The notes under the pieces were generated by a model that did no database searches, was not told the origin of the DNA, and saw only the letters and a program-made list of their open reading frames with translations. A program made the translations under genes and the position numbers. This document shows, in pieces, positions 1,300-32,151 of a DNA stretch of 64,000 nt. Every line of letters begins with the position of its first letter. The stretch's first letter is position 1. Source of the stretch: Orbicella franksi (Eukaryota); the NCBI GenBank assembly GCA_964199315.1, contig OZ116708.1, positions 2,108,001-2,172,000 of the forward strand, written 5' to 3'.

Positions 1300-4200
1300 A
1301 TGGCTGACTCCAAGCAAAATAACACTTCAGTGTCAACTTTTGCCACTTTCTTATTAGTAGTCTACTTCATGTCTTCATCGCAAGTTGATGGAGATCTTCT
1401 TGTTGATCCTACGTTGATTGGGCAAGAGCTGCAGTCTATTGCGACGAACGCACTCGGTGTGGACGAAATGCAGGTAAGCAGAAGGCTTCAATAACAGATT
1501 TGTTTTAGTTGGATAGCAACGTTTGCGGTCAATTCAAAGCTCAATTTCAAAAGCTCAAATTTGAACATTAGAAACTTTGAATTCAAATTTGCGTTGACGC
1601 GAGTGAAATCAAATTTAGGATCTTCTAGTAGCAAAAGCTCGCGCTCAGGTTTGATTGACCATTTATGGGCAGTTATAGAATCAGAGTTAGTTTACTAAAG
1701 TAAACGTCTGTAATTGATGTTTTAGAGATGCGAATATCCAACCTGATGAAACAGTTGACACACACATTGAATTATTTATAACTGCTCAGCCATTTAAACC
1801 ATTTGTTTGTTAGACTGGAAGGTTTGCGGTGGACTGCAAGCAGTAAATAACAAGCTCTAGGTAATTTAACGTGTTCTACATTTCGAACACTGCATGCATT
1901 TACTGGAGGAAAGTGATAATTCTTCTCTTTCATTTTCGAAGGCTTAACCTCAGAAATATGTTAACGTGTACGTATAATGAATTCTATGCAAATAATCTCT
2001 CTATCGGTCATTATCAGGCTTGAAAGTAAAGATAAGAATTTTGCATAAGTATGAACATGGACGGTCATACTTATGCGAAATTAAAAATAAAAATTGTAAG
2101 CTTTTATGAGTTTGTTTGTCATCATGAAAAGATCAAAACAAGACTTCTTGCATGTGAGGCATTCGATTTGTTTCGGTTTCTAAACATGAGTCTGCACAGT
2201 TGTAGAGATATTGCGTTACGTTATACTGCACGTGCCCTAGCCCGTGTTATTTTGATCACCAGTTTGATTTCAGCCAATCAGATGCTTTGTATGATTATTT
2301 AATTTTGTAACAATTTAAGCAAAAGGACCGTCTGTATTTTGGGGTCCTGCATTGTGTGCAACACTGAGCGAATAAATCACTTAAAGCTCTTTCTTTGTTG
2401 TACGTTATTACACATCGATTTCGCTACATGGTGTCAGAAGTAGGACGGTCTAATCACACGCCTAAGGATGACTGACTCTCCAGCACAAGCACAAGCACAA
2501 GCAGTACAAGCAGGTACGTCACAGATTTTTGTTCCGCCGTCAAATTTGCCGCCGCCTAAAGCGCTAAGCTTTGACGACAATTTAGCCACGACATGGAAAT
2601 CGTGGAAACAAGCATGGAAACGCTACGAAATCGCCACCAGCGTGCACAAACAGGAAGGTGTTGTTCGCGTCTCGACTCTATTAAGCATCATTGGCGAGGA
2701 CGGTGTCAAAGCCCATGACACCTTCACGTGGAATGAGGGAGAAGACCAAAATGACATCGAGTTAGTTTTGCAGAAGTTCGATCAATTCTGTGCCCCCAGA
2801 ACACAAGTTATCTATGAGCGCTATCGTTTTAACAATAGAAACCAAGAGCCAGGCGAAAATATTACCAGCTACCTTACAGAGAGGCGAACGATCGCCAGAA
2901 ATTGTGCACATGATACAATCACGCCAGATGAAATACTGCGTGACCGCCTCGTGTTGGGCATACGTGACGATCGCGTACGCGAGAGACCTCTCCGTTTAAA
3001 CGATCTGACCCTTCAACGAGCCGTGGACCAAATCAAATCTTCAGAGCAGACCCAACAGCAGGTAAAACAAATGACCGGAGGAGACACGTTGGTCCACGCA
3101 TTGAATAAATCTGGAAACTCTGATCATGCTGAAGACGACAAGAAAGAAAACCACCGAGAAAAGAATGTTTCAATTGTGGAATGATCCATGGACGCGACTG
3201 CCCAGCGTATGGAAAAACATGTTTCAATTGTGGAAGAAGGAATCACTTTGCGCATAGATGCCAAGCTTCATCACGAGGAAGGAGGAACAGAGTCTCGACT
3301 GTTCATGAAACCGCTGATCCGAAACAAGATCCATACTACATCGGTTCAGTTGCTGAGAACAAACCCCAGGCACGGATGGCTGTCATCAAACTGCAAATCT
3401 CTTCGCCTACACCTGAGACAGAAGTTCAGTTTCAAATTGACACCGGATCTCAGTGTGACATACTCCCCGCCCGGATATACAAACAGGTGATAGGAGACAC
3501 TGAGCTTCAGCGTCTCAAACCTTGCCAAAAGGAGATCGTTTCGTACACAGGAGAACATCGCAAAATCACCGGCAAAGTCAACCTCCCCGTTTGGTCTGGA
3601 AGACATCGAAAGTCACTTGATTTTAACATCATTGATGGCGATTACCGGCCAATTTTGTCATTAAACACAAGCGTTGGCCTTGGCTTTGTAAGTCTGCACA
3701 ACTGCGATGTCCGAGCAATCCACGTCGACTCCCCCTCCACCACCCTGCAAGACGAATTCACAGATGTATTCGAAAGATTAGGCGCCCTTCCAGGAAAGTA
3801 CCAAATCGTTATTGACGAAAACATTCCACCATGTGTTCATGCCCCGAGACGAGTGCCAGTGGCTCTGCGACAGCGCATCAAAGAAAAGCTTGACGAGCTG
3901 GTTGAACGTAAAGTGCTCGTGCCAGTCACGAAACCAACTCAGTGGGTATCCAGCATGCTGGCTATAGTGAAACCGAACAAGGTACGGATTTGTATTGACC
4001 CAAAAGACCTCAACCGCGCGATACGTCGAGAACATTACCAGCTGCCCACCATCGACGAAGTCGCATCCCGATTAGCAGGCGCCAAGAAATTTACCCTCTG
4101 TGATGCCAAGGACGGTTTCCACCAAATCCTTCTGGACGACACGTCTAGCTATTTGACAACGTTCAACTCGCCTTTCGGACGTTACCGTTGGGCACGTATG

Positions 4201-7200
4201 CCGTTCGGCATATCCAGTGCTCCTGAAGTCTGGCAGCGACGAATGCACGAGTTCGTTGAAGACCTCGAGGGCGTTGAAGTCATCGCAGACGATTTTCTCA
4301 TCGCTGGCTTTGGTGCAACCGATACAGAGGTCAATGCCAGCCTCGAAAAGAATTAACGTGCGTTCCTTCAAAAGTGCCGTGAGTGGAACCTCGAACTTAA
4401 CAAAACGAAGTTCAAGCGAACCCAAACTGAAGTGCGATTCATGGGCCATCTCCTGACCCCGGAGGGCCTGAAGGCTGACCCATCCAAAGTGGGAGCCATC
4501 TTAGAAATGCCTCCACCGAGTGACGTAAAAGAGCACAAGAGATTCCTTGGCATGGTCAATTATTTGGCCAAATTCCTGCCCCTATTGTCTGACATGACGG
4601 AACCATTGAGAAGACTAGATGACAAGGAAGTTGAATGGTGCTGGCTTGAGCAACACCAGAAAGCATTTACCACCATCAAACAGTACTTGGCCGATGCTCC
4701 GGTATTGAAATACTATGACGTCAATGAAGAAGTCACGATCCAATGCGACGCTAGCGAGACAGGTCTGGGAGCGGTTCTTATGCAAAAGGGACAACCCATT
4801 GCCTTTGCGTCCAGAGCTCTGACAGATACAGAAACCCGATACGCACAAATCGAAAAGGAGTTATTAGCAATTGTGTGGTCAGCCAACAAGTTCGACCAGT
4901 ATATACTGGGACGCGATTGTGTGCATATCGAGTCTGACCATGAACCACTGAAAGCGGTCTTCAACAAGCCAGTTCACAAGTCGCCAAAAAGGCTTCAGAG
5001 GATGCTGATGGCTCTACAGAACTATTCTTTGGATGTCCAATACAAGAAAGGAGAACTCATGTGGATATCCGATGCCTTACGTCGCGCCTACCGCAACACA
5101 ACTGAGTTTGTACAGCATGACACAAGTCTCGTCTGCTCAATTGAGGAAATTGACCATTCGGAGAACCTCTCTATCGCCCCGTACCGAATCGCCGAATTCA
5201 GACGCGAGACAGCGAGTGATGCCGTCATACAAAGTCTAATTGCGTCAATAAAGAGTGGATGGGCGCCGTCAAAGAAACAGTGTGACCCGGTGCTTACACC
5301 GTACTATGACAGGCGAAGCGAATTCTTGGAGGACAAAGGATTAATATTCCTTGGGGAACGGCTGGTTGTACCTACATCCCTGAGGAAAGAAATGTTAAAG
5401 CAAATTCACAGGTCACACATTGGAATCGAAGGATGTCTCCGTCGTGCCAGAGAAGTCTTGTACTGGCCACTCATGAACGCCGAAGTGAAAGATTTTATTT
5501 CCAAGTGCTCAATCTGCCAATCCCATAAGCCTGACCAGTGTCGTTAAGACATGCAACCTTATCCAGTACCGCCACGCCCTTGGTCAATGCTCGCTGCTGA
5601 TCTGTTCGAGCTGGGACAACAGCAGTTCTTTCTTCTGGTGGACTATTGGAGTGGGTTCTTTGAAGTACGGGAGGTAAAAGTGGCAACGTCCGCCAGTGTG
5701 ATAGCTGCATGTAAAGTCCAGTTTTCACCACATGGGATACCCGACGTGCTAATCACCGACAATGGATCGCAGTTTGCGTCATCAGCTTTCACTGCCTTCG
5801 TGAGCGAGTGGCAGTTTGAACATCGTACCTCCAGTCCTCGTTATCCCCAATCAAACGACCGCGCAGAAAATGCCGTGAAAACCTGCAAGAATCTGATGAA
5901 GAAAGCAAAGGCAGATGGACAGGACCCCCTGTTAGCCCTTCTGGATTGGCGCAACACACCAACAGAAGGGATCGGTACATCACCGGCTCAGAGGCTGATG
6001 GGACTCCGTACTCGAACCTTGCTCCCTACACATCAAAAACTCCTGCTGCATTCCGGTCACAATGATACTGCAACCAGACTGGCTGGTCGCAAATCGCGAC
6101 AGGTGCGTCAGTACAACAAGAAGTCGCGACCCCTTGAACCACTGAGATATGGACAGGCCATCCGCATGAGACTCCCCGGAAAACCGGAAAGGTCTCTGGG
6201 GACATGTACACGTGTTTTGAAAAACAGGTCTTATGAAGTCGAGGTATGTGGGAGACGTTATCGTCGAAACCGTCGACAACTGAGAATGACACCTGAAGTT
6301 CTTCCGCCCGGTAACCTACAGGAAAGTGAGTTGCCTGACCCTCTCCCGAAACAGTCCCAGAAGTTGAGGCTAGAGACCAGTCAGATCCCCGAGCAAGAGA
6401 CAGCTGAGCCACTGGTAGCCAGTCGTAACCCCAACAGTGGGGCTCACACTGAACCTGAAGTGGAGCTAGTAGAGGTGCTACCACGCCGTTTAGAACGCAG
6501 GCGTTGTCCGCCTGTATGGCAACGAGACTATTACATGACGTGATTATCTCGTGATCTTGTAATCTCAAAGTAAACTGAACATTTATCATTGGAGCCTTGA
6601 ACTTGAACTTTCAGTTTTTTTGTTTTTTTGTTTTGCTTTTCTATTTCTCGTTGCATTTAATCTTATATAAAGAGGGAGATGTAGAGATATTGCGTTACGT
6701 TATACTGCACATGCCCTAGCCCGTGTTATTTTGATCACCAGTTTGATTTCAGCCAATCAGATGCTTTGTATGATTATTTGATTTCGTAACAATTTAAGCA
6801 CAAGGACCGTCTGTATTTTGGGGTCCTGCATTGTGTGCAACACTGGGCGAATAAATCACTTAAAGCTCTTTCTTTGTTGTACGTTATTACACATCGATTT
6901 CGCTACAACATTGCGAGCAACTGACGGCGGTTGAAAGACGGTGGGTAGTAAAAGTAATATAATTCAACATTGAAGTGAACGAATAAATATCTACAGAAGC
7001 AACAAATTTGCAAATGTAACTAGATAGGATAGGTCAATACACAGGGGCATCCAACGATCTGTTCCATAAAACTATGTTCCTCATAAATCCTGCAGGTTCA
7101 TCTAGAACATTTTATTTTATTCATTTTGTTTAGAAACATTTTGAAAGCCTTCAATACCATGACCAACTCATATCAGAAGATGACATCATTAACTTGGCCG

Positions 7201-10200
7201 GAAAGCTTCGTAACAGGTTTACGAGAAGGTTTGATATTGCAAAACGCCTTCAGAAGGCAGTTGAGGAATCGTACTCCAGGACAATGAGTACCGCGCCACA
7301 AAAAGAATGCTGCCTAGTCAATAAATCGACCCTGACGTACGATGCACGGTTTCGTTCCAAAGTCGACCTAGACACTATCTGCCTGAAAATTTCTGGTCAT
7401 GTTCCTGAAAATCCTGGATATTTAGACCACAGATTTTTCGAGGAAACGAAAGCCATTTCGGAGGAACATACTTATGTCAAGTGGCAGTACTTCGGATCAG
7501 AGGAAGGTGTTATGACCAACTTTCCAACATATGATGATTCTGAACCATGTGACAGATACGATCCTCGTTACAGACCTTTTTATGTGGAAACTGCTACTCC
7601 TGAAGCGAAAGATGTGGTGCTTGTTATGGATACAAGCTGGTCTATGACTGGAGACAAATTAAGGGTCGCTAAAGAGGCTGCAATAACAGTTTTAGATACC
7701 ATGAATCCAAAAGATCAGGTAAGTAATATTCAGTTATGTTTGAAAAGAGGGCAAGTCAGCTTTGTCGTTTTAGAGAAAGACGTTCCCAAATTATTGAACA
7801 AGGGCCAAAACTTCCGGGTGCAGGTCGAATAACATTAATATTTTGCACCTTTTGTTTGGCAAGGAATGCAGTGCAGATTGCACGTGCATTTCCTACCAGG
7901 AATATGGCCACATTAATGATTGTAAATGTAAATGTAAATGTAAATGCAAATTTAATGTCAAACACAGGAAGTGCTTGCGCGATCACCCGAGCCAGAGGCT
8001 CATGATAACTAGTGCTTGACAATAATCCAGATCGAATTGGAATTTGGAAATGTTTTTGAGGAGAGGGGAAAACCGGAGAACCCGGAGAAAAACCTCTCGG
8101 TGTAAAGAATTGAGAACCAACAAGAAGCTCAACCCACATATGACGCTGGGTCCGGAAATCGAACCCGGGACACATTGGAGGGAGGCGAGCGCTCTCACCA
8201 CTGCGCCAACCCTGCTTATCACACATCACGAGAATACCCCTGCTGAACGACCTTCTGAAAGGTCGTCCCCCCACAAGTGACTACAAATGATGGTTTCTAC
8301 AACTATTTCCATTCATCTATTCACTGGCTTACGTTAAGAGTGAGGTTAATTTTCCTTGCTCCAGGTTACTTGATTTTCGTCGTTCTAAACTGATCTAACC
8401 ACGTGGGCCACGGAGTGTCATGTGACTCTTTTGACCCAATGATTTTTAATTTTAAGGTTGGCATTGTTTCATTTGTGGGGGACGTCAAGACGCCACAAGA
8501 TGTTGACTGCTACAGTGAGCAGTTAGCTCTTGCAATTCCTGCAAATATAAGACATTTGAAGGACTTCGTCGATAAACAACACGCTTCTAATGGTAAGTAA
8601 ATGGCAACGTACCTGACTGGATAAAGGAGTCGACTTTCCCACGCTGCAAAAAACGAATGATCCATCTGATATTCGTATAGTGCGTAGTTACACCACCTAT
8701 GTAGTTGATCTGTAAGGTTGTCACGACACCTTTCAGTTTTTTGAAACATGATTTAAAAATTTAACTTCACATACTCGCCGCGGCAGTTGATTTAACTGTA
8801 AACTGCAAATTCAAGATTGATAAATAGCCAAGCCGTCAAAAGAATCTATCTTCTGTCCCCAGTTTTACCGGTTATTGTCCTATCTGCAAGCAATGACAGA
8901 ATGGTTTCTCCAAGAGAGTTCGTTGATGCTCTTATTTCTTGCTTTACAGGTCAAACAAGATTCATACCGGCTTTTGAGAAGGCGTTCGAGTTACTGAAAG
9001 GCTCGGTCTCTAAAAACTCAGGGAAAAGCAAAAAACGAGTTATTTTATTTCTGACGGACGGGGATCCCTCGGATTCCAAGGCTGACTTGTTCGGGATCAT
9101 TAGGGACCGGAACTTGGAGCTCAATAACTCTGTCATCATTCTAACGTACGGATTTGACAGGGCATACCAGGAAATTCTGATAGATATCGCCAACCAAAAC
9201 ACGACAAAGTATGGCGTACCAGCAAATACGTCTGTCGGAGACATCGCGGTAATGTAGCAAATGTAACGCATTGTTGATGCGCCACTCCCACTCATAGGCT
9301 TATTCAGCAGACCAACAGGGGATTGGGGCAGAAAATCCCCAGGCTGACCTTTAGAACTTTTTTAGTATTTAGGGATAAAAAGCCGCCCAGATTTGCGAAT
9401 TTGGTTGAAATTCAATTGAGAACAATTTGGTTTGACATGTCATTGTAATCAAATGCGATATTTTTAGGGAGAATTTAACGTTCCCGTGGCGACGGTATTT
9501 TGAGCGACATTTGACAGATATGAAACTTTTTGTGTTTTCTTTATCAAAATCTGACTTGCATGCAGGACTTTGAGGTAGTTTCGATTTTCTTAATTTTGAG
9601 TCATTTTAATTGTTTGTCGAGTGCTGCTCTACAGTGATCGATATATGTTTTTGAGATTTCCAAAATCATGCTAAAAATGGTGACAATGTCCCTTTAAGTA
9701 CTTGAGGTGGGTGCTTTTTGGTTTCATAAATTTAGTATGGCATTTGAAGACAACATTTTCAAACTAATTAATAATTTCATCAAGTCTAAACAAAGGAAAT
9801 CATGACCGTGACAGTGTTTGGATATCTTATCTTAATTAGCATAGATTTTTACGACTTTTATTTCCGTTTTTCTTCTTACTTTAGGTTTTGATTGAGAACA
9901 TTTATCAAACACTCAAGACAGTGTTTAACCACATTTCCAAGCACCTCAAAGTTCGTCAAAGATACTCCGCTACGCGTCGTATATTCAACTCTCTTCTCGG
10001 TGTTTGAAAATGTGGTCAAACACGGTCTTCCGTGTTTGAGATATTACTTCTCTCTGTTACTTATCCTTGAGGTTATATAATTGGACGTACCTCCAGACTC
10101 CAATACCTATATACCATACTTTAGACATTCTTGAAATTACGTAGGATCGTTCTCTCGATCATCCTTGTCTTAGAATCTGAATAGGGCAAGATAATGTTCC

Positions 10201-13200
10201 TCTTTGAGCTGTGACTCTCTCTATCTCTAGCGTGGAAGCTACACTTTTGTTGAAGATATCAGGACGCTGAGAAGCAAAATGGCCACGTATTATGCTCTAT
10301 TTGCGAAGCAGCTTAGTCGTCCAGTGGTTTCTGTACCATATGTTGACGCGTTTGGGACCGGTAAGAGAAATATAATAACAATGACAATGGCAATGACAAT
10401 GACAATGATAATCATTTTAAATTGAAATTTTAATATTCCAACACGTTTAATGTACAGAATAATGTTACAGAAGCTAACTCGTTAAAAAGAATGTCAAAAA
10501 TTTAAATAATAAAAGTAACAATTTGTAACATCGAATATCTTGGTTTTCACATTAAGTTTGTTTTGAAATTATTGTCCATGTCTTAAAAGTGAGAGCTGAA
10601 TAGAAGTTGGCGAGCTCGCTAATCTTTCTTTTTTCCTTACTCCATTTTCAGGGCTTTTAGTGTCTGTAACCCTGCCTTGCTACCATCAAGGAAGGTTTAT
10701 TGGCGTGACTGGGACAGATATCAATATTGAAGACCTTATGCCTGACATTCTTGAGTACGTTAAACAAGGCAGGACCACCTATGCTTTTATGATCATGACA
10801 TCTGGAAGGACCGTAATCCATCCACTTCTACCAGCTCCAGCTGACGCCTACGGTTACCCTATTTATATGGACATAAGGAACCTGGAACGGCCGGAGTCCG
10901 AGTTCAAGGCCATTTTTGACTCGATGGCAAGGTATGTGCATCGACGTGAATCCATGAAATAAGATTGGGATCTTCTATATTAAAGGGAAGTGCGATGGCA
11001 TAATGGTTGGTGCGCTGACCCTCGGATCGCCCGTTTTAGCTAGGGCGGTTTGTTTTTCCATTACAGACCTGGTGAAATCATCCAGAGAGTTATTATTTTG
11101 TCCATCTAAAAATTACTCATTCATATTCAAGCCACTAATTGAAAATTTAAAAGCAAGAATTCTCGGGAGTGTTATATCATGGTGTGAAATGGGGCAGCAG
11201 ACCGCCCAAGCTAAAAAGGTATATTGCGCTCTCAGCTAAGACCTTTTACTCTTGGATTTTTTGCTTTTGTATGCCTCCGTGATGTTACTGAGGACACGGA
11301 GATAAACTCGGCCTGATGTATGGTCGTTACCTCGCTTAACCTGATATATAGAGACCTTACGTTGATTTAAATCAGGTGTTTCTTTGAAAAAATACATAGA
11401 CACTTAAATAAAGTTTTCATTCATTCATTCATTCATTCATTCATCCATCTATCCCAAATCGAAAAGCCATACCGATTACTTAGCTTTAAAGAAGTTCTCC
11501 TAGTGCCGAAAGTTCTTTTTGCTTGGGGTGGAAAATTCAAGACATAATGGAGGTATCCGTGCAAGCAGGCTCTGGGAAGCTGAGCGCCTGAGGCAAGAAC
11601 ACTGTCTGGCTAGGTTATATATACAACAACAACAACAATAATTTTTATTTTCCTTCATTTTAAAATTACATGTTAGTTGGCCCGCGGATAGCAAGTGCTA
11701 ATCTAGGCGGGCCATTAATCGCTTGAACTAGATTAATTAAACAACACTGATATTAATTAAATAGCAATACATATCTGGAGAAGTTTCAAATTCGTCGGGT
11801 GATCAATTTAAATCAATTCTTCTCTTTGATTGCTCAAGAGGTGTGAATGGATCCAAATCATTCTACGCCGCCCGGTATCTACCTAACGGAGGAAACATAA
11901 CGGAAGGAGTCACAGAGACGTATATTAACTCAACATATCATTGGCGTCCTCTAGATGGCACGGATTTTTATCTTGGAGTAGTCATACCAATCTCCATGAA
12001 GAACGAAATGTTAGACACTTTGAAAATCCCAGTTGGTAGGTAAATTAGGTTTGTTCCCTTCTCTGTCTGATTGACTGACTGATTGGATGATTAATTGTTG
12101 ATTGAGTGAGTGGTTAATTGAGCGATGCATTGTCTGACTGACTGATGACTGACTGACTGACTGACTGACTTAGTGACTTACTGACTGACTTAGTGACTTA
12201 CTGACTGACTTACTGACTTACTGACTGGATGATTGGTTGTTTGGTTGGGTGGGTGATTCTTTGTTTGTTTGATTGACTGATCGATTGACTGATTGATTGA
12301 ATAATTCATTCATTCATTCATTCATTCATTCATTTATTCATTCATTTATCCATTCATTTGAGTATGTAGAGCATGTTTGTTAGAACCTCCTTAAAATACA
12401 AAAGTTGTGCTTTACTTGATAGAAGCATAAAACATGAGACCATACTGTTGACAACAATCTTTTATACCTTTCCTCAGATTACACCTTTAACTATCATCGA
12501 ATAGACCTGGCGCCAACTCAGAAGACGTGTTTAAACTTTGGACGACTAGCAACAAAGGGTAAGAACAAAATTAAACCATATATGAAGACATTTTGTCAAG
12601 AAACCACTAATTCGTGTGAACGCATGAAATTCAAACCCATTTCGGTCAGTTACTGTTGGATATTTCGAGCTCCATGCAACTTTGAACTATTTCCCTGTTG
12701 CGCTTTAAGTTCGAGGTGGCGAGATTTAACTGTACCGTCGAACCTCTGTTAAGCGGCGCCCTATTAAGCGGCCAACTTCTATTCGGCGGCCAATGGCCAA
12801 AGTCCCGGAAAAATTGTCAGCCACATACTGTAGTAAAAACCTCTTTACAACGGCCACCTCTATTAAGCGGCCGCGGCCAGCTTCTTGCCGTTCCAAGGGT
12901 GATTTTGTTTTGTTTTATACCTCTACTAAACGGCGAGGAAGATCAGATTTGAAGTGGGACGGTTTTTAGCCAGATGAAGGTAAAAGAATGGCAATGTGGA
13001 ATACTGTAAAAACACATTTTGAACAGTGTTAAATTATGACAATCACAGAACAAAGTCCGCAACGGTTTAGTTTGTTTGCACAGCACACGAGCCAGTGTTG
13101 GGTTGACAGAAAACGTCGCGTAATTGTTTCTTTGGCTTTTGTTAACGTTATGAACTGCATTATAGCTATCATTGTTCCACTTTTTTCTCCACTTGCATTT

Positions 13201-16050
13201 GTTTGTACTTATATTTAATAAACTGAAAACTGGACTGCGCCCAACGTTGCTTTCGGGAGAACCTCTATTAAAGGGTCACCTCCTTTAAGCGGTCAGTTGT
13301 CTCGTCCCTGAGAGTGGCCGCTAAATAGAGGTTCGACTGTACTTCCAAAGTAATCGACCTTAACTTCCGAGAAGCCAGAACTTCGTCGTGCCCATTCCTA
13401 TTCCATTCAATTCAAGTTTCTCCACATAGATACCACCGTTGTAAAATTTGCCCCAGACGCCTTCCTGGATCCTTATGAATATTTTGGCACCGATGAAACG
13501 GAAGCGAGTGTAAAGTTACTAACCTACTACATGATGGGTCAAGCGGGTAGTGAAGCATATTCCGAGCTAAGAGGCGGCATTCGGGACACCGTGATTGCTA
13601 CCTGGAGAGCAGAAGATTTGTGGTTAAATGCCAAGACAGAGCTGACACAATACTTGATCAAAAGATACATTGGTACAGCAGATGGAGTTTTTAGGGAAAC
13701 TCCGGGTGATGTGTTGTCCAGAGGTTATGATCCCCGAAGACGACCCTGGTACGTGATGTAACATTAATATATATATATTTCTTAATATATACACATATAT
13801 ATATATGGATTTCTGAAAACCGTGACAATTTCCAGGAAATACACAAGTTCCTTCAGTCAATCAATCGCTGCCAGTCTCTCACTACGCAGGCTACTCACCC
13901 ACCTTGCTTGTGTGGAGCTGGCTGGTTGCCGGTCATTAAGTCTCCGCAGCACAGTCGACGAAAGCCGGCAAAGGGTATGACCAGTTTTCAGCTAAAAGTG
14001 CCGCTCCCTGATTATGGCCATTGCGGCCTGGCTCGGTACCGGCTGGTAGCCAGCACCCTGCTGGGCTGTCTGTCAGAACCGTTCTTGACAGAAGCCTCCT
14101 TGGTTTTAAAGTGCCCGCAATGACCTGACGCCGACCATCGTCGATAGTCAAGCAAAAACGTTTTGCACCAGTTTTGACATCTTTTTTCATGAATCCAGAC
14201 ATACATACAATAACGAGAATATAGCATGCATGGCGCGCACAGGATAGTCGCAGTACCACATATCACATTAGGTCGTTCAGTTCCTCCTCTGGTTTTCCTC
14301 TCTCGGGCTTAATTCCTTTTAAAACTGGCAAGCTCAATCTTTTATCTCCGCTTTAAAAATCTAGATGAGTAATTTCTCTGAGATCGATTTTGCAATAAAA
14401 ACTAACGATAAATAATCACGACATTTCGATCTCTCCGAGTTCATTTTCAAGTGCGAGAAAAAATTCACAAAATTAGCATAATATGTTTCTAAAAGTAAAA
14501 ATACTTTAAAATGTCATGAACGGTAGAATGCAATAAAATATGTAAGACAAGTGACCTAAAACAATGAGACAATAGAACAATACTAATAAGAGTAAAGAAA
14601 TGATCTAAACAAATTATTTAGCACCAATTGAAACACAACTTTTGTTCAATGTAGGAAAATAGCCAGGACAGTCATTTATTCCGACACTTCCATAAACTTT
14701 TAAAAGTTTGCGCAATGTCATCCGGCTTCTTAACATGTTGCTCCCTTAAGTGTTGTCCAACTGCCGATCCTTCATGTTCTTCAATTCGTTGGTGTAGGTA
14801 AGATAAGATAAGAACTTTAGGCGACATAACCTGCATCGCACAAGTCACACTTGAAACATTGCACCACGCATTCTCTAACGGTGGTTTGTCTTCCCTCACT
14901 TTGATTTTGTCCTTGATCTTTCGACTTGTGTAGACCGTGCTAGTATCTGCGTTGATCTTTCGACTGAGGTCTACGTACTGCGTTTGCAGATTTCTGGTCT
15001 TTAAAAGGCAGCACGATTCTAATCGGAGCTTCTCTCTTCTCCGATACTTGGGTAAGTGAATCTTCAGACACTTTTGAATCAATGAATTGGCGGATGGTAT
15101 ACTGCAAAATATTTTCAGGGTAGCACAGTCGAGCAAATTTGACTGTCTTATTTTCAAAATTTTGTTTCTTTAAGAACTAAAACCAACACTGAACAAAAAA
15201 ATGCGTTCAAATTCGCGCTAAACAATTTGTTTATATCAGTTCTTTAAGCTTATTAATATCAGTATTGACTTATGTTAATTTTATATATTTTTACTCGCAC
15301 TTGTAAATGACGTCGGAAAGGTCGAAACGTTGTGACTTTTTATTGTTAGTTTTTTTAAAAAAATTAAAAATCTAGATCTGTTTATCCATCCTCAAGGATG
15401 TGTTGTTGTTGTTGTTGTTGTCGTCGTCGTTGTTGTTGTTGTAAGTATACCTCAGACGTCGATCACTGATTATTCAAGGTATTACGCTGCATTACGTCAT
15501 TCGGGATTTCTTACTCTTACAACACCATATTTGGACGCTACTGGAGCTGGAGTGGTGATAACCGCAGCCCGCGCTTTGTATCGCGGAGAGTCAAGTCGCA
15601 TTCATCAAACAAGTGATGAGGTGTTGGGGGTCATGGGAGCCGATTTTCCGCTGACCTATTTTTACAGGTATGGTATTGAAATATACTTGTTGATTGATCC
15701 TCAACAAGTAAATATTCCAGGGAGGGCCGCGAATTCAGTTAACTCCGTTTGAGGGCACCTGAGTGCTGTTAAAATTGTAATTAGATTTTCTGCAACATAC
15801 CATTCCCTGATGCTCGTTGATAATGCCACCCACCCTTGTCAAAAAACACGGGAGTATTTTGAAAGATGTTTCTTTCTTGATGTACGCAACAACTTCAGAC
15901 ACTGCACTAACTTAGACACAGAGCAGCATTCTGCCCATGCTGTACCGTGTCTGCTTCCCTTCACAATGAGCTAGGAAAACTGTAAGTTTACTGAAATTAA
16001 AAGTAAAAAAGGATGTATAGAGAAAAAGCACTCAACAATTTTATTTTACA

Positions 16051-16089
<39 letters not shown>

Positions 16090-16177
16090 CATCATCCTCA
16101 CGTAATGTTTGCTTAGAGTCCTTAGGGCCGAGACCAAACCATGGTCCTGGGGCACTAGGGGATAGCCGGTTTTTAGC

Positions 16178-16214
<37 letters not shown>

Positions 16215-19200
16215 TTTTATTATTATTTAAATTATTATTATTATCTCGAAAAAGGCACTTAAGATACTTCCCACATTTGCATTACTAGCGTTTGTAACAG
16301 AATCCTATTTGTTGTCGGTTAAGAGGAAACCTAGAAGTCTTACATCTGTATCACCGCTAATACAATAATAATACAATTTAACGCTAAATGTAATGAGCTG
16401 ACCAACCGTAAATGTAATACAAGTTAACCTCAAATGTAATAACATAGTTTTAAAAGCTCCCTTACGGTTACGAGGCATCACTTGAAGTCTCGGGGATTTA
16501 CACTCTTTACACTCTTTTTGAAAGTGGGCTATTATTAGAAGTCCTTCTGGTTGTGTTCAAAAGATTTTGATGAGACGGTAGTATGATAAAACAGATAAAA
16601 ATATACTGATGGTACAGTTGATATAATGACAACTTTAATAGCAACGATACTCATTCATATATAATCACAACTTATTTGTAAATTAAATAAACATATTAGA
16701 AAAACGTATTCATACCCGTATAGGTATTGTATGGGAGTAACCCCCCGGGGGCAATCTGCCTAACGGTTTAGTTAGTAAAGGTGATTAACCGTGATTGGGT
16801 AATCTGATAATCTATTGAAGTGATATCATATCACTGATGATATTGATGCCACTTACGCCTTTGCCACCCTTAGTAACGTGCTATTACATTAAAGGTTAAC
16901 TTGTATTACATTTACGTTTGGTCAGCTTATTACATTTAGCGTTAAATTGTATTACATTTACGGTGGGGTAAGTTATTACATTTAGGGTTGATTTTTATTA
17001 CATTTGCGGTTAGTATTACATTTAGAGTTAGTTTTTATTACATTTACGGTTGTTATTACATTTAGCGTTGTTGTTACATTTAGCGGTGATAGAAGTCTAC
17101 CGACTGGCGTTGATCCATACAATGAGTCTCATAAAGGTTCCATGATCTTTTGAAAACTGTCTGGCAGGTTAATAGCAAAGAACTACCCAAAGTGTGAGGA
17201 TATACAAGCCTATTCGTGCTTCGTTATGGACAGCGCTGGTTTCCTTGTCATGCACCAGAGCTTTATGGACCCTTCAGCTTCAAGACAAGCGATAGAGCGC
17301 GTGCATATCGCCGAGAAAGAGGAGCATATAGCAGAAGACATGATTAACAAGGGTTATCTGGTTAAAAAGGAATGCCGAAACCTAGAAGACATAGAAGAGC
17401 AAACATTTTATGAAGTCAATTTACCTCAATCTGGTGAAGTGGATGCAACAGATAATGCTGGAAGTTGTACTAAATACCAAATTGGAAAAATTGAAGGGAC
17501 AAACATGTATTTAGGTAAAATACGATAAGTTGTGTGAAATATTTTAAATAACACTTTATATACACTTATAAGCCGATTCGTGCAATTCTATAATATTATA
17601 TTTCAGCTAGCCATTATTTCTAAACAGACCAGGCTTTTCTTCTTCCTTGTCTCAAGGCAAAACACCCTGTGATTCGTAAAATGTAAATTCTATAACAATG
17701 AAACTTAATACGTGTATCACAAGTCGGAATAGTGCGAAATATCAAGGAAAATTACGTCATAATCTCCGAACAACCGCTAACTTGGATTTTATTATTTTAA
17801 CAAAACGCAGGAAAACCTTTAAAAACCTCACTAAATCTAAATCTGAGTCGTAAAGGGGAAAATTCAAAATTTGAAAAACATGCTTGTCAAAGTATGGTTG
17901 CCATGGCAAAAACAACGGTATGTCTTACAAGATCGGATCTAAATGTAAGGAAAATTCACCAGATTTGGGACTTATTACTTCAGTAAGCGTTCAAACTTTC
18001 TGAGGGCCTTAAATTTTCCCTGCATAGACAGGAAAATTAACACTTGACTGTATTAAATTACAGGAATTTCTTTGAGAGATCCAGGTTGTTCTCGAGGCTG
18101 TACTTGTTCTTCAAATGAACCGTGTAAATTCTTATCTTGCAAATGCCCTTGTATCTCTTCACTGGATTTTCATTACTGTCGCGGAGAGTTCCCCAATAGC
18201 AGGTTGGTTGATTTTAAGATAACTTTACTTGATCCTGTTTTGCAAATTTCTCCTTACTTTTCTCTTGCGAAAGCTAACCAGTTGCTTTAATGCTCTTTAG
18301 AGTAATAGGGCCACAGTAGGAAGGGGATATTTGCAAGATTAGGTTGTTTGATATGTTATTTGAAAATTAAACCTTTTTTATAAGGTTTGCATTACCAATA
18401 CGTTCGAGTAATTCAGTTTGCCACACGGAAATGTGCAACAGCAACAAAATGACTTTTAATAAAAGGACCTTGCTACATCATATACTTTAGACAAAAGCCA
18501 AGATGATCTTATTCCAAAATAATAACATGACATATGAAAAGGAAATTACAACTGAGTCTCGTGGATTCTAAATATAACGACTCGTACCCATTCAACAGAA
18601 ATGATAGGCAAACGAATCTCTTCGTAACTGAAGTTTTGAGTGGGTCATCAAAGCTATTAGCCAGTGCTCCTCTTCCCCCCCCCCCCCCCCCCTTCCTCCC
18701 CTTCCCTGGCTGCTCCTCAGCCGTGTGGAGTATGTTTATATTACAACCAAATTGTACTGTATATTTTAGTCTTCCTGTTTGCCCAGCGCTGGCCCCTGAC
18801 CAGTCGGAAGTTCTTTCTCCAAAGAAAGAATGCCCTAGGTTGGAAAAATGCTTTGATCCTCACTGCAAAGAGAAAAGCGGTCAGCACACCTGCGATGGGA
18901 TTGTTAGTTGCTATTGGTGCGAGAGGGATAAAGATGATGTCATATTACCTAAGCCGTACTGTGATAGTTACGAACAGTGCTTCAGAGGGAAAGAGACTCC
19001 GGCCATTAAGGGTAATAGTAAAATTATTTAATCATCATTTTTGATACTTCAAGATTTCATCCATGTGTCAATGACCAATTTAATTAATCACACTGGAATG
19101 CGTTAGAACCCCACCATCTCCAACTAGCAAGGGGACGCAAATAATAGTTCGAGACAAAGAGCTTCGAGATAACTGACAGTAAATGCCTGAAATATCACAT

Positions 19201-20767
19201 GCAAGAGCTTGAAAGAAGGGGAAGGGTAGGGATAGCGGGGTGTTTGAAATAACCGAGTTCGAGATAACGGGTACCTTTACACCANNNNNNNNNNNNNNNN
19301 NNNNNNNNNNNNNNNNNNNNNNNNNNNNNNNNNNNNNNNNNNNNNNNNNNNNNNNNNNNNNNNNNNNNNNNNNNNNNNNNNNNNNNNNNNNNNNNNNNNN
19401 NNNNNNNNNNNNNNNGTTGCGACACACAAGCTCTGGAGACACATGATGACACAATACAGTATGTTGCACCAAGATTGTATCCTGCAAATGCAACGTCGCG
19501 CACATTGTTGCTGCAACTCAGTGCTGACTCCTTTTATCTTTGGCAGACGATGAACCAAATTGTGGCCAAGCAGAGACGTCAAGTCCAGATGGTGGTGATA
19601 ATGGCGGTTTGTCTACTGGTGTCATTTTAGGAATTTGTACAGGGTGTATAATCATCGTGGCGGTGGTAGTGGCTGCACTATATTGGGTAAGAAACTAGCC
19701 AGTTAATCTCTTCTGTATATTGTGCCTAAGATAGTTGCCATCTCAGTTAATGGGTGTTACTATTTATGGAACTTAATGAAGGGTTTTAAATCTGATACAA
19801 ACACAGCTTTACAATTCCTCCTGATTCACAGGACGCCTTTGGCAGGGGCAAATTTGGAACGTACATTTTAAAATCCGATTTTTTTTCATATTAACATTCT
19901 GTAGTCGAGCATTTTCACCGTGACTATCTGCTGATGTTTTAAGCATATAAGAATTCTAAAAGATAAGAATTTTCACCTTCGGAGAGTACTGAATAGAATT
20001 AAGTTTGCAGCTTGACTAACACGTGCACATGTGCGGGTTTTTTTCTTCAGGGTAAACGTCATTACCGACCAATGGGTGATATGCCGAATAATCATGAGCC
20101 GGACCATCCCATGTCAATTGATAACCCCATTGGTCCTGTATACGCAGCTATCAATGACACCCAGAGAGAATCTGGATCACAACCTTCCACAAATGGAGAC
20201 CTAAACATCATAAGTAAGCAACCTGAACCTCATGACCAGCTACCAAGCATTCCCTTGAAAAGAAAGGTCAGTGGTAACCAGCCCCCTCCCATTCCGGCAA
20301 CACGGAGGCCTTCTGGAGCCGTAGAAACACTGGCTATGGGAATTTTGCAGTTGAGCGATCAAGAACATCCCAGAAAGGCATCCATTGACGTTGGAAGAGT
20401 AAACGCTCATCGAGCTAAGAGACCTTCTGAACTTGGCGACCCATCTACCCCTATTCCTGAGGAAAACACGCTTCAGGTGACATACCCGCCGACCAGTTGG
20501 GGAAACAGCGAGAGAGTCTATGGTAATATGCAGTGTTCTGACATGACAAACATATCAAACCATCTTCCTGAAAGGGATATGCCTCAGACAACAAACCCGG
20601 CGACTATTTCGGAACAGGGAGAAAGACTATATGGCAATGTAACGCCAAAGGTTGCTAAAATACCAGTGGAATCACATGATGAAGGGGCTGGTGATATCAC
20701 TGACGATAATGTATACTTGGAATTCGGTAATACCGGGGAGGCTCCTGTAGAAACACAACAAACTTAA
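1300..20767 (+). CDS. CACHD1: Gene A: VWA- and dCache-domain type-I membrane protein (CACHD1/alpha2delta family), ~1324 aa, 15 exons
   Basis: Manually spliced exons: 1300-1473, 7134-7718, 8457-8592, 8950-9248, 10231-10360, 10652-10931, 11839-12035, 12478-12558, 13430-13748, 15479-15667, 17168-17514, 18064-18202, 18770-19011, 19547-19686, 20051-20767. All introns are GT-AG and the total of 3975 nt is in frame. Landmarks: signal-peptide-like N-terminus, WQYFGSEEG, YDPRYRPFY, VWA DTSWS...VILFLTDG, PYVDAFG...GTD, YDPRRRPWY, Cys-rich stalk, TM VILGICTGCIIIVAVVVAALYW and a 238-aa tail. The symbol denotes the family (CACHD1-like), not proven orthology. Confidence 0.9.
2201..2428 (+). repeat. 5' LTR
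   Basis: TGTAGAGATA...TTCGCTACA; differs from the 3' LTR at 5 of 228 positions; contains AATAAA at 2371-2376. Confidence 0.95.
2429..2445 (+). promoter_or_regulatory. Primer-binding site, probably tRNA-Leu
   Basis: TGGTGTCAGAAGTAGGA directly follows the 5' LTR. It is complementary to a tRNA 3' end ...CUUCUGACACCA, which I recall as tRNA-Leu. Confidence 0.75.
2468..6543 (+). pseudogene. Disabled gag-pol polyprotein of the LTR retrotransposon
   Basis: Gag starts at 2468. Knuckles CFNCGMIHGRDC and CFNCGRRNHFAHRC, protease DTG, RT (DAKDGFHQI, MPFG, IADD), RNase H (CDAS, EKE, SDH), integrase HHCC and core (DLF, TDNG, RAENAVK) are all visible. Lesions: one frameshift at ~3130-3160 and in-frame TAA codons at 4354-4356 and 5545-5547; ORFs 3181, 4432 and 5551 share one frame. 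Confidence 0.92.
6669..6679 (+). promoter_or_regulatory. Polypurine tract
   Basis: AAAGAGGGAGA lies immediately before the 3' LTR. Confidence 0.85.
6680..6907 (+). repeat. 3' LTR
   Basis: 228-bp direct repeat of 2201-2428 with TG...CA termini. Confidence 0.95.
7921..8216 (-). mobile_element. tRNA-derived SINE in intron 2 of gene A
   Basis: The minus strand has an A box (TGGCGCAGTGG), a B box (GGTTCGATTTCC), a central GGTTTTTCTCCGGGTTCTCCGGTTTTCCCC domain and an (ATTTAC)n tail. A related copy lies at 48181-48370. Confidence 0.85.
9903..10043. repeat. ~140-bp imperfect palindromic interspersed element
   Basis: Arms TATCAAACAC...CCACATTTCCAA and TTGAAAATGTGG...GTGTTTGAGATA flank a CGCTACGCGTCG core. 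Confidence 0.7.
12060..12360. repeat. Compound tetranucleotide microsatellite (GACT/GATT/CATT)
   Basis: Runs of GACT, GATT and (CATT)n in intron 7 of gene A. Confidence 0.85.
12735..13339. mobile_element. Non-autonomous Tc1/mariner-pogo(Tigger)-type element, 605 bp
   Basis: TIRs C[C/A]GTCGAACCTCT[G/A]TT[A/T]AGCGGC, TA duplication on both sides (12733-34 and 13340-41), and internal CTATTAAGCGGCC repeats. Confidence 0.85.
14660..15340. mobile_element. Penelope-like retroelement remnant (GIY-YIG endonuclease C-terminal region), two fragments in opposite orientation
   Basis: Minus-strand YTSRKIKDKIKVREDKPP...LHQRIEEHEGSAVGQHLREQH. Plus-strand ~15125-15230 reads KFDCLIFK...LKPTLNK...IRAK, followed by a 3' non-coding motif ending GTCGAAACG. 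Confidence 0.65.
16349..17091. mobile_element. Non-autonomous TIR DNA element with subterminal ATTACATTTA repeats
   Basis: Termini TATCACCGCTAA / TTAGCGGTGATA. Segment 16368-16441 is the reverse complement of ~16880-16955. The right arm carries about ten ATTACATT(T)A units. Confidence 0.8.
19285..19415. other. Assembly gap (131 N) in intron 13 of gene A
   Basis: Run of N. Confidence 1.
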
Positions 20768-25301: not shown

Positions 25302-28300
25302 CTAGGGAATGCATTTTACGTAGCCATGCACATCAAGGCAAACAGAATTACTTCTCTCGCGATTTAGTCGACCTGGACTGTAAGAGCCACACTGTTGTGA
25401 CTCACCAGCAGCAGGTTGCAGCATATTGGTATCGAGTGGACTCCTAAGTTCAGAAACAGGCGAGGAAGGCGTCTTGGCCAGCCTGTTCTTCAGAGGAGTA
25501 GTGGCATTTGTATTGTCTTCCGAATGTCTTCTGGGTGGTGCAGGAATTACTTGTGCTGATTTACCTTTCTCTTCAGGAATATCCAATGGCGGAGAATCGA
25601 ATGCCCTTCTGTTCTGATACTCAGGTGGCAATGGAGGTCCATTACACTCTCCCTTCTCCTCGAGATATGATGCCTGAATGCTCGTTGTTGGACTAGTGGC
25701 ACTTGCAGCTGCAACAGATTCCTTCCGGCGAGGAGGAGCGTCCGGTGGTTTCTCGACAGACCGGACTGTCGTCTCATTGTCATAGGGCGATGGCCCCTGA
25801 GCGGAAACTATCGGAGCTATTGAAGCCTGAGGTGGAGACTCTAACGAAACAGGTTCATCATAATGCACATCAGATCCGGCATTGTCGAGTCCCAGCTCTG
25901 GAAGAGGCTCTGGAGGACGTGTCCTGGTATCTGTGGGCTCCGCAGTAATGATGTCTTGCAAGGAGGTACTTTCGCTGCTGTTTGTTGGAGGGTCGCGGCA
26001 ATATTTTGTTACCTATATTGAAACAAATTGACAAAAACTCCAGCGTTAGAAAACCACTCATCCAAATCGGTTTCAACAGTAATCAAATCAAGCATCTAGT
26101 TTCAACGTAGTTTCCTCGGGGGTTACGGAGACACTTACAACTTTCACGGTAACAAAAAACTGACAGCATTATAAATTTCATCTTGGAGTTTATAGCGCTA
26201 TAAAAGAATAGTCCTAATTTGTTTTTTAACAAGAGATGGAGCTATGCTTACCAAGAACGTGGTTATCGCTATAACCGCCAGAAGAGCCGTACACCCAAAG
26301 GCAATTCCTGCAAGAGCTCCAGTCGACGTACCATGACCGCTGTCTTTCTGAACTGCGTTAACTTTGTCGTTAGTTCTTTCGTCCCTATGTGGATGAAGCG
26401 TTGTGTTCGAGGCCCTCATTGGACACTTTATATTTTCAGCTGAGGATAGTTTCAAAGAAACAAAAGTAATGAGCATGTGAGCTTGGAAAGAAATAACGGT
26501 ATAGGTAGAGTGTGAGAAAGATGGAAAGATGTTACTTGATGAGACAAGCTATTCGCAGAAAAAGGCAAGAATTGATGGATCATAATCCTAAAAGTGAGTG
26601 ACCGAGTGTGAGGTCAAGATGGCCGTATATTGGCCTTGTTTTCTTTTGCATGTAATAAAATACCTTCTCTTCCTCTAAAGCACACTTCTGAACTAGCACA
26701 GTAAGGCTTTTTTAATGGCACATCGTCTTTGTCGTTCTTACACCAATAGCAGCCAACGACGCCTTCACATGTTTGCGAACTGTTTCTTTCACTGCAGCGA
26801 GGATCAAAACATTTTTCTAATCCCGGGTTAGGATCTAGATCTTTGCATTTCATTTTAGGGACGGAAGAGCTGTGGTGACCAGTTTTCGCCTCTATCTCAG
26901 GCGCCGACCGTGGACAAATAGGAATGCTGAAAATAATGCAAAACAAAAGTAGGATTATGTAACACATTGTCTGACAAGCTTGAGCCACAGTAAAGCTTCG
27001 TACCTATTGATTATATGACACGACAGTCAAATCCCAATTTAAGGAGGCTATGTCACTATACAGACCTACCCTAGGCCAGCAAACGACTTTTTCCTCTCTC
27101 TTTCTCAAATAACTTTTTTAACGCACACATCGCTCGCACGTTACCGTGACCGTGGACAGAGATAGAAAAATCAAGAACGCGCTAAGAAATAATCAAATTC
27201 CAGGATTCGAAAAACTACCTTCTTGAAAAAAAATAAAGCTCTTTTGAGACGTTATTCCATTGCTGTCCATTTTAGATAAAGAAGGTGACGGAAATCATAG
27301 AAACGTCTAAATGTCAAATATTTCTAACCAGTGTCAAATGTAGTTTTAGTTTTTTAGCAAAGTAATTTTTTGATGTCAGGGTCCGCTTTTTGGTAATTTA
27401 ATGACATACGATATGCTGATTGATTATTTGGAATGCAGTGCTTTATTTCAACTACATTTTCCCGCTTTTACAAAATTACATTGGCAAACCTGCTATCGGG
27501 GAATTGATTAAGGCAATAACGAAAATCCATGGAGGAGGTGCAGGGGCATTCACACGTCAAGTTGAGGAAGGAACATTTTGTATCCAAAGAACAGGGGCAT
27601 GGCTCTGGAGTGCAGAAAAGCTCTCTGACCACGACTCCTGCGAATAAAGATTGATAAATGTCGATGAATTTATGGAATGGCTAGATGACTGACTGACCGA
27701 CCGATCAGTCGATCGATTGATAGATCGATAGATTGCCTGAGTCAGACAGGCAGTCAGTCTGAAAGACAGGCCATAGACAGACAATCATTGACAGTCAAAC
27801 AGACACTAAGATAGACAGACAACCAGCCAGCCAGGCAGAAAGTTAGACGAGCAGAACAACACCCATGCATTAATTGAGCAATCTTTTAAATGCTGTAAAA
27901 AACGGTTGAATTACGAACCTATATATGCGTTGGTTCCAATAATTTGCGCCATCTGGTATTTGGTGCATCTTGCACCACTTCTAAGAGTGTCCACTCCACC
28001 CGGTGGTAAGTGCACCTCGTAAAAGCTTTTCTTCCGAATCTCTTCTAGATCGCGGCATTCTCTTTTTATCAAGTATGTCTTCTTGATTAGATCTTCTGCG
28101 ATATATTTGTCTTTCTCAGTAATATGCACGTATTCTGCATCTGATGCTGCAGTTGATGAGAGCAAAAAGTCTTCGTGCATAATGAGGAAACCAGCACTGT
28201 CCATCACGAAACAAGAATATGTTTTTGTCCATTTACACTTTGGGTAAACCTTGGTGAGTAATCTGTGCAAATAATAGTATAAAATGATGATTTGCTATAA

Positions 28301-31300: not shown

Positions 31301-32151
31301 TCTCGTATGTACCACATTCCTTGGACACACAGTTCCTGTATTCTAACTAACTGCCTAGCTTATATTAAGATTGATTTAGAGCTAGTTTCGAGGTTCTTGC
31401 TGTAAATCTTTAAACAAAAAATCAAGAATAAGGCGAAAACGTTTTATTAGGTATTTGCATTATGAGGAGACATAAGATGCTGACTCCTCTCCTGGACTCA
31501 GCAGTTGACTCGAGTTTAAAACTTAATTAAGAACACAGTTATTGCATAATATGTGATATTGGAACAATGGTTATAATGTTGATATACAGAGGCAACCTTT
31601 TTAGGTGCTTTATTTTATTCTTTTGATCTTCTAATTTATCTTATCGCTGATTGTGTTGTATTTTTCTTTTTATTTCGATGTAAATATGATTAGAATTTGG
31701 CTTATAATTTTCATTTTCATTTTTTATTTGTGAATAGTTTTTATAAATAATTTTGTAAAGCGCTTGTGAATAGCGTCGCGCACAAATGGCGCCAAGACAA
31801 TTTAACCCACGGCGTGACTCAGACAAACAAACCATTTCATGCGCTGCTTCTTTGAAAGCGACGTATGGAGCACTTCAACGCAAAATTCACTGAGTAATTT
31901 CGCACTGCACGCTGATGGCCACTCTAGCTCAAAATGTCAGAGAAAACTCCCAACATGTACCTTGGAATAATAAAAGTACAGAGATTGAAGGAGGGCGGCA
32001 AAGTATGATGGTAAATAGGTCTAAATACAAAGGCTGTTCATGCGTCGTTACGTCATTATTAGATCTTAGTAGAAAAATTATTATCATATGATTGTACATT
32101 ATATATATATTATATATATATTATTATTACTACTACTATTATTATTATTAC

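Follow-up and report, generated by a model that had tools for sequence, protein, structure and literature searches.

A tandem array of CACHD1-like genes

The window analyzed here, a stretch of 64,000 nucleotides from the Orbicella franksi contig OZ116708.1, contains four (A–D) of the at least seven CACHD1-like genes that this stony coral carries as a tandem array (Table 1). Each gene encodes a type-I membrane protein in which a VWA domain is inserted in the first dCache_1 module, the latter being itself nested in the second dCache_1. The spliced model of gene A contains zero stops, with AG/GT at all junctions, and runs from a signal peptide through a VWA_N/dCache region, the VWA domain, two dCache_1 modules and a Cys-rich C-terminal ectodomain to a TM helix (aa ~1063–1089) and a tail of ~240 aa. 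The models of genes B, C and D were assembled exon by exon; the 5′ end of exon 4 of gene B is missing in an N run (32749–32983), with the gap kept unfilled in the model, and the 5′ exons of gene D were located in L001. The ORFs are intact and the 15-exon structure is conserved; genes C and D are 93.6% identical.

Gene A is transcribed and its splicing agrees with the model, as all five junctions of exons 5–10 were matched by RNA contigs and reads (three runs); 14 RNA runs contained this stretch. The VWA MIDAS motif (DxSxS) is intact, in gene A as DTSWS at 7629–7643, right after YDPRYRPFY. The gene models and hydropathy indicate one TM helix per protein and long cytoplasmic tails (240–350 aa); the tails evolve quickly. 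Between C and D, the ectodomain shows purifying selection (omega 0.39) and the tails are near-neutral (omega 1.05).

The motif strings on which the original prediction was built are all present, and the frames that carry them splice together into intact genes. A scan with the nine-residue pattern, for which the chance expectation in six-frame translation is ~0.006 (a rough residue-frequency estimate), returned four contiguous copies, every one within predicted exons. The interval 7540–15667, to which the prediction was assigned, spans gene A only, from pocket 1 through the end of exon 10. Pfam searches with the gene A exons gave matches to VWA and to one dCache_1, and the homologs P0165 and P0196 displayed two dCache_1 stretches. 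Single exons of the second dCache had no Pfam match; this domain was recognised in the full-length homologs and by a direct PDB search. The full-length window proteins are absent from both protein databases searched, the best full-length relative being the Oculina protein P0165, 65% identical to A.

Table 1. Positions of the genes, pocket motifs and variable codons in the window
Feature	Position	Strand	Remarks
Gene A, CACHD1-like	1300..20767	+	15 exons, 1326 aa
Gene B, CACHD1-like	25302..35834	-	15 exons, ~1346 aa
Gene C, CACHD1-like	38769..50010	-	15 exons, 1460 aa
Gene D, CACHD1-like	57357..64000	-	truncated by window end; exons 6-15 inside
A pocket 1, first half, YDPRYRPFY	7557..7583	+	Y200, R205, F207, Y208
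A pocket 1, second half, PYVDAFGTG...GVTGTD	10336..10719 (10336-10360 + 10652-10719)	+	Y435, D437, D464
B pocket 1, first half, FDPRYRPYY	33948-33974	-	
C pocket 1, first half, YDPRYRPFY	48604-48630	-	
A pocket 2, beta-2 strand, GVFRETPG	13684..13707	+	hypervariable codon E717 at 13696-13698
A pocket 2, first half, YDPRRRPWY	13726..15482 (13726-13748 + 15479-15482)	+	Y727, R732, W734, Y735
A pocket 2, second half, PYLDATGAG...VMGAD	15525..15644	+	Y751, D753, D789
B pocket 2, YDPRQRPWY	28710-28732 + 28554-28557	-	
C pocket 2, YDPRQRPWY	42704-42726 + 42194-42197	-	
D pocket 2, YDPRQRPWY	61285-61307 + 60775-60778	-	
B, residue-717 equivalent	28760-28762	-	W
C, residue-717 equivalent	42754-42756	-	L (TTA)
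D, residue-717 equivalent	61335-61337	-	T (ACA)

Family assignment

Judged by sequence, by the fold of a homolog model and by the alignment of the C-terminal ectodomain, the coral genes are CACHD1-like, not alpha2delta. In a phmmer search against the PDB, CACHD1 was the best match (8s7c, 1.8e-18), compared with 1.5e-6 for alpha2delta-1. Among the 150 best phmmer matches to proteins, every one with a name was CACHD1-like. The Oculina homolog P0165, the closest available, stood in for the window proteins in structural comparisons; its AlphaFold model (pLDDT 88, pTM 0.85) superposed on solved CACHD1 with a TM score of 0.85 over ~1050 columns and on alpha2delta-1 with ~0.64. After the matches to CACHD1/alpha2delta and to VWA domains, the next dCache matches of the model were amino-acid-bound bacterial domains. 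These searches, the named relatives and the modelled fold replace the alpha2delta framing in which the genes had originally been placed. The architecture is that of CACHD1: after a signal peptide comes dCache-2 with dCache-1 nested in it, dCache-1 itself being interrupted by the VWA domain, and then one TM helix and a cytoplasmic tail.

Vertebrate CACHD1 (PDB 8s7c, 9eq6), the best match in both sequence and fold, shares with the coral proteins the type-I topology, an alignment that extends over the entire ectodomain and takes in its C-terminal region, and, in the second dCache, an AA_motif (FDPTRRQWY...PYLD...GIDF). It differs in that its pocket 1 is degenerate (YEHRSRPIY, PF.D) and its MIDAS non-canonical (DHGAS), whereas the coral proteins keep both near-canonical, and in being single copy rather than at least seven in tandem.

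In alpha2delta-1 (PDB 8fd7, 7miy), the leucine/gabapentin site of pocket 1 has the same split motif, with YD.R.RP.Y before the VWA domain and PY.D...D after it, and the equivalents of R243, Y238, Y452, D454 and D493 are found in coral pocket 1. These residues, together with the intact MIDAS and the shared overall architecture, would suit alpha2delta calcium-channel subunits carrying a gabapentinoid-type site, but such an identity is highly improbable considering that sequence and fold are much nearer to CACHD1, that the overall identity to alpha2delta-1 is only ~18%, and that the coral proteins have a TM helix followed by a tail of 240–350 aa. The second dCache of alpha2delta is without the motif that is canonical in the coral proteins. 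Within coral pocket 1, W245 is replaced by F or Y, Y219 by N or V, and V209 by Y, a change that, in alpha2delta-3/4, reportedly clashes with gabapentin. An alpha2delta subunit identity was rejected.

The two dCache pockets

The prediction that both amino-acid-binding signatures are retained holds strictly only for pocket 2, which is canonical. In pocket 1, the arginine of the AA_motif set Y121/R126/W128 is kept, but the tryptophan, one of five residues that define the motif, is replaced by F in A, C and D and by Y in B; in B, the first tyrosine, Y121, is additionally replaced by F. In paralog G, outside the window, the tryptophan of pocket 1 is retained. The equivalents of Y144 and D173 are present, separated from the first half of the motif by the VWA insertion. 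In gene A this second half crosses the exon 5/6 intron (10361–10651), with the junction confirmed by RNA; it reads PYIDALGTG...GTD in B and PYVDAFGTG...GTD in C, and the spacing Y-x28-D is the same in A, B and C. The first half of pocket 1 in D lies beyond the window, and the L001 sequence there is identical to C. The exon encoding the second half matched the dCache domains of PctC and PctB, and exon 5 alone had no match in the PDB. Among 24 coral sequences, pocket 1 shows little variation between copies.

Pocket 2 contains all six AA_motif positions (Y, R, W, Y...Y...D) in A–D, corresponding to Y121/R126/W128/Y129 and Y144/D173. Its second half has the form PY[LV]D...M[GA]AD with the spacing Y-x37-D, longer than the 27–34 residues published for eukaryotic motifs. 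In gene A, the exon 9/10 intron (13749–15478) interrupts the codon of W734, the junction 13748/15479 being found in three RNA runs. The R, W, Y, Y, D and D of pocket 2 are invariant in 24/24 coral sequences, and in 70 animal CACHD1-like sequences the anchors are invariant or at least 90% conserved. The ligand-anchoring residues of both distal dCache modules are kept, as originally proposed, being invariant or nearly so in the 24 coral and 70 animal sequences.

The pocket 2 exon matched PctA directly in the PDB search (2e-5), with GYDPR.RPWY aligned. Compared with Pseudomonas PctA/PctB/PctC (PDB 5ltx, 5lt9, 5ltv), the alignment (GVF..RP...GYDPR.RPWY; LTLT.PY.DA...ITAA) matches at all motif residues. 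The bacterial domain, however, lies between two TM helices and signals to a chemotaxis kinase, whereas its coral counterpart is embedded in the large ectodomain of an animal protein and has a longer beta-4/beta-5 loop (Y-x37-D versus x28).

A variable residue in pocket 2

The strand variants FRET, LRWT, FRLT and FRTT had been read correctly for A, B, C and D, and place E, W, L and T, respectively, at residue 717. Across the 24 coral sequences this residue takes 10 types, with an entropy of 2.98 bits compared with 0.30 for the neighbours within ±3 positions, and it ranks first of 948 ectodomain positions by entropy excess over neighbours. Codon 717 differs by two nucleotides between C and D (TTA versus ACA), despite the 93.6% identity of the two genes. 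In sequence alignments across different dCache modules, residue 717 falls opposite Y219 of alpha2delta-1, a gabapentin/leucine contact, and M111 of PctA, where the aligned segment 109–118 contacts ligand side chains. The paralog-specific pocket variants are found at positions where alpha2delta-1 and PctA contact the ligand side chain.

Gumerov et al. 2022 (PNAS, PMC8915833) report 'double-AA_motif' dCache_1 proteins in pre-vertebrate eukaryotes, including invertebrates, and describe this group as ancestral to alpha2delta and CACHD1. Since this class is published and both motifs are present in most of the aligned invertebrate CACHD1-like sequences, the coral genes are not a new kind but new members of an existing two-motif class, from whose described proteins A–D differ by the F or Y in place of the motif W in pocket 1. 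The main text of that article names no cnidarian and does not describe a tandem array or a hypervariable pocket residue (PMC8915833). The copy-to-copy variation of residue 717 in pocket 2 appears to be a new observation.

Possible functions of the pockets

Bacteria use the dCache amino-acid sensor as their main extracellular sensor. Among animal proteins, alpha2delta and CACHD1 are, to our knowledge, the only ones to have kept it; in alpha2delta, its role is in drug binding and trafficking, and we know of no CACHD1 for which amino-acid binding was shown experimentally. The coral paralogs provide a natural variant series with which one can ask if pockets of the CACHD1 type bind amino acids and how their specificity is determined, since the anchors are frozen and one residue, predicted to face the ligand, changes between copies. 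Considering that two-motif ancestral proteins are already published, only a demonstration of binding and of distinct specificities would make the advance more than incremental.

The best explanation overall is that the second dCache of the paralogs probably forms a putative amino-acid-type pocket that has been retuned between copies, as suggested by the conserved motif and the variable strand position. The ligand carboxylate would contact R732, W734 and Y727, and its amino group Y751 and D789, in the manner of PctA and of alpha2delta-1 pocket 1, with residue 717 (E, W, L or T) and residues 705, 754 and 755 shaping the side-chain cavity. The paralogs would consequently prefer different ligands. 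In pocket 1, where the arginine and aspartate anchors are kept and F or Y replaces W, the little variation among coral copies makes one common or structural ligand more likely, comparable to L-leucine in alpha2delta-1. By analogy with CACHD1 and alpha2delta, occupancy would most likely modulate folding, trafficking or the binding of partners (CaV channels, Frizzled/LRP6) rather than serve stand-alone taste reception.

Alternatively, the motifs could be conserved solely for the sake of folding, stability or the binding of partners, with the proteins acting as CACHD1-type co-receptors or channel modulators without a small ligand. The known functions of CACHD1, Frizzled/LRP6 binding and CaV modulation, require no such ligand, the CACHD1 structure paper neither reports nor discusses one in the pocket, and pocket 1 is little varied and deviates from the strict motif. 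However, the same residues were lost in the second dCache of alpha2delta and in pocket 1 of vertebrate CACHD1 while the fold persisted. As the motif is dispensable for the fold elsewhere, its invariance in the coral proteins points to functional constraint, and constraints of folding alone would hardly account for a lone hypervariable residue in a pocket strand that is invariant elsewhere. We regard an exclusively structural or partner-binding role as unlikely.

Going beyond a retuned amino-acid-type pocket, the CACHD1-like tandem family of stony corals might comprise true small-molecule receptors whose second-dCache pocket is retuned mainly via one beta-strand residue, with different amino acids or head-group metabolites (glutathione, taurine-like or symbiont-derived compounds) as ligands. 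Taken jointly, receptors and ligands of this kind are quite unlikely, but if real they would constitute an animal chemoreceptor family built on a prokaryotic dCache sensor. Dedicated feeding chemosensors for dissolved amino acids or glutathione, signalling via tails that bear tyrosines and PxxP, are more doubtful still. Tandem expansion with a diversified ligand-facing residue does resemble chemoreceptor families, among them the PctA/B/C paralogs of bacteria, and on chemical grounds the gamma-glutamyl end of glutathione would offer a free alpha-amino-acid head group. Yet the tails that would have to signal are near-neutral between C and D (omega 1.05), the relatives studied to date act in Wnt and CaV contexts, and in Acropora the cachd1 transcripts vary by colony position and are not tied to sensory tissue.

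Gene models, fold and expression

A six-frame scan of the window confined the nine-residue motifs to related coding blocks on both strands, and spliced models of the CACHD1-like genes A to D were built with two coral homologs, P0165 (from Oculina, 65% identical to A) and P0160, as guides (see table). The span 7540-15667 of the original prediction corresponds to gene A, from pocket 1 (the first dCache_1 domain's putative amino-acid site) through the end of exon 10; the tryptophan codon of pocket 2, within the second such domain, is divided by the exon 9/10 intron. The A-D proteins combine a signal peptide with a single transmembrane helix and a tail of 240-350 amino acids. On the exons of gene A itself, Pfam found a VWA and one dCache_1 match; homologs gave two dCache_1 stretches.

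For every exon with any PDB match, the best match was CACHD1 (8s7c/9eq6): the pocket 1 exon matched it at 1.8e-18, versus 1.5e-6 for alpha2delta-1, and the remaining PDB-matching exons at 8.7e-10, 4.5e-9 and 4.8e-8, with no alpha2delta matches for these in the PDB search. As a proxy for the window proteins, residues 31-1060 of P0165 were modelled with AlphaFold from an alignment with 69 relatives (mean pLDDT 88.3, pTM 0.85). The model superposed on solved CACHD1 with a TM of 0.84-0.85 over ~1050 columns, compared with 0.61-0.66 on alpha2delta-1; after the CACHD1, alpha2delta-1 and VWA structures, its next dCache matches were PctA, CtaA, PctB and a proline-bound cyclase sensor, all bacterial domains solved with an amino acid bound. 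At the VWA MIDAS motif vertebrate CACHD1 has DHGAS, differing from the coral genes; the GQT threonine is kept in A and C, its B counterpart lying in sequence that the N run removes. All three of A, B and C keep the LTDG aspartate.

The exon 5-10 stretch of A was present in 14 RNA runs from ~10 studies. RNA contigs and raw reads placed on 10200-15700 gave five GT..AG joints, all identical to those of the gene A model; a single poly-A contig covers exons 5-9 and enters exon 10, with its loose ends running on into exons 4 and 11. The K705 and E717 codons of A had no listed variant. The CACHD1-like genes of the window are real and expressed, the RNA check covering the exon 5-10 stretch of gene A.

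Coordinates of the genes and other features (window positions unless stated otherwise)
Feature	Position	Strand	Remarks
Gene A	1300-20767	+	15 exons, 1326 aa, 0 stop codons, AG/GT at all junctions
Gene B	35834-25302	-	exon structure as in A
Gene C	50010-38769	-	exon structure as in A
Gene D	past window end to 57357	-	exon structure as in A
N run	32749-32983		removes 5' end of B exon 4 (~14 nt coding, around MIDAS threonine); gap unfilled in B model
Array	2.046-2.203 Mb of the window's own contig (G000:C11)	E, F, A +; B, C, D, G -	the two strand sets converge between A and B
VWA MIDAS, A	7629-7643		DTSWS, intact
VWA MIDAS, B	33888-33902		DISAS, intact
VWA MIDAS, C	48544-48558		DISAS, intact
RNA joints, A	10360/10652, 10931/11839, 12035/12478, 12558/13430, 13748/15479		GT..AG
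LTR retrotransposon	2198-6907		gene A intron 1
Direct repeats	2198-2428, 6677-6907		231 nt, 97% identical
Integrase-like ORF	5551-6543		of the LTR retrotransposon
Exon 1 copy	299-469	-	inverted, diverged
Inverted repeat	55-247		85 nt
Last exon, C	38769-39815		1047 nt
Last exon, D	57357-58403		1047 nt

An expanded tandem array

Searching the coral's own genome revealed at least seven CACHD1-like paralogs inside ~160 kb of one contig, E, F and G lying outside the window, a tandem array that appears to be newly observed here. Both motifs occur in all seven; G keeps the ancestral tryptophan in pocket 1, and E and F, being almost identical, are a recent duplicate pair. A maximum-likelihood tree places the coral genes in a single expansion with respect to Nematostella, made up of two clades: clade I comprises E, F and G, and clade II, on a long stem, divides into A-type and B/C/D-type groups. 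Since complex and robust corals occur in each group, the A versus B/C/D split is old; B separated from C/D in a lineage-specific split, and the C/D split is recent. Between C and D, dS is 0.055, and dN/dS is 0.39 in the ectodomain and ~1.05 in the tail.

Conservation of the two pockets

The AA_motif consists of Y121, R126 and W128, which contact the carboxylate, and Y144 and D173, which contact the amino group; Y129 is also conserved. Pocket 2 of A-D has every one of these residues, including the Y129 equivalent. Its exon aligned directly with PctA (2e-5), YIGTADGVFRETPGDVLSRGYDPRRRPWY against YLGQQDGVFTMRPDSPMPAGYDPRSRPWY, and in the following exon LTLTTPYLDATGAGVVITAA aligned with LTLTEPYVDAATQELIITAA. 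Pocket 1, which is split by the VWA, retains the arginine, the second tyrosine and the Y144 and D173 equivalents; tryptophan, the one defining AA_motif residue that it lacks, is replaced by F (A, C, D) or Y (B), and the first tyrosine is F in B. The original claim that both dCache signatures are retained therefore holds strictly for pocket 2 alone. All motif strings quoted in support of it, including Y-x28-D of pocket 1 and the strand variants FRET, LRWT, FRLT and FRTT, are present in the window. In amine-binding relatives Y is possible at the tryptophan position, and loss of R126 marks the switch from amino acids; with its arginine invariant, pocket 1 still appears suited to holding a carboxylate.

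Gumerov et al. (PMC8915833) place the motif in the second dCache of CACHD1 and the first of alpha2delta, and describe "double-AA_motif" proteins in pre-vertebrate eukaryotes as the source of both. In our own alignments, both motifs occur in most CACHD1-like proteins of sponge, sea anemone, mollusc, annelid, hemichordate and tunicate; across 70 CACHD1-like sequences no change occurs at the two arginines of pocket 1, at its Y129-equivalent tyrosine or at the tryptophan of pocket 2, and conservation of the remaining anchors is 90% or higher. The core two-pocket point of the original prediction is therefore right, for a class already known, of which coral genes A-D are new members; the motif observation is borne out in full, its interpretation in part.

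A hypervariable residue in pocket 2

Thirteen ligand-lining residues of alpha2delta-1 and the side-chain contacts of PctA (F99, Y101 and segment 109-118) were mapped onto both pockets. Among 24 coral sequences, variability in pocket 1 was low at all mapped positions, and the pocket 2 anchors R, W, Y, Y, D and D were invariant. The Y219/M111-equivalent of pocket 2 (E717 in A) had an entropy of 2.98 bits with ten residue types (99th percentile), and its contrast with the ±3 neighbours (0.30 bits) ranked first of 948 ectodomain positions. In the P0165 model this position lies on strand beta-2, flanked by R686, which hardly varies, and the invariant P689. The residue is M or I in clade I, resembling PctA, and one of E, Q, K, T, W, L, S, F, I and M in clade II. 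Such a hypervariable pocket residue in coral CACHD1-like paralogs appears to be a new observation. The C and D codons (TTA versus ACA) are two nucleotides apart, a difference that alone, given ~4.6% amino-acid divergence, is only suggestive. A is the only one of the 24 with K for W at the F99/W207-equivalent, and at the A455 and L456 equivalents it departs from B, C and D.

Fixed head-group anchors beside one variable side-chain contact are the pattern of receptor paralogs that diversify in ligand, such as PctA/B/C. By this likeness, pocket 2 probably binds an alpha-amino-acid-like ligand, and the paralogs probably differ in preference. In the CACHD1 structure paper the interfaces described are those with Frizzled and LRP6, and a pocket ligand is not mentioned; by analogy, the read-out would be modulation of trafficking or partner binding. 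The proposed link to feeding activators found no support, the sole coral literature match being cachd1 transcripts in Acropora that differ by colony position.

Other features of the locus

Intron 1 of gene A holds an LTR retrotransposon with direct repeats and an integrase-like ORF. About 0.9 kb upstream of the real exon 1 of gene A lies a diverged copy of this signal-peptide exon, 45% identical to P0165 residues 1-58 and with an inverted repeat nearby; the copy may have been left behind by a rearranged paralog. For C and D, the C-terminal ~90 amino acids of the tail match the Oculina homolog twice, suggesting that the end of the tail was duplicated internally in tandem.
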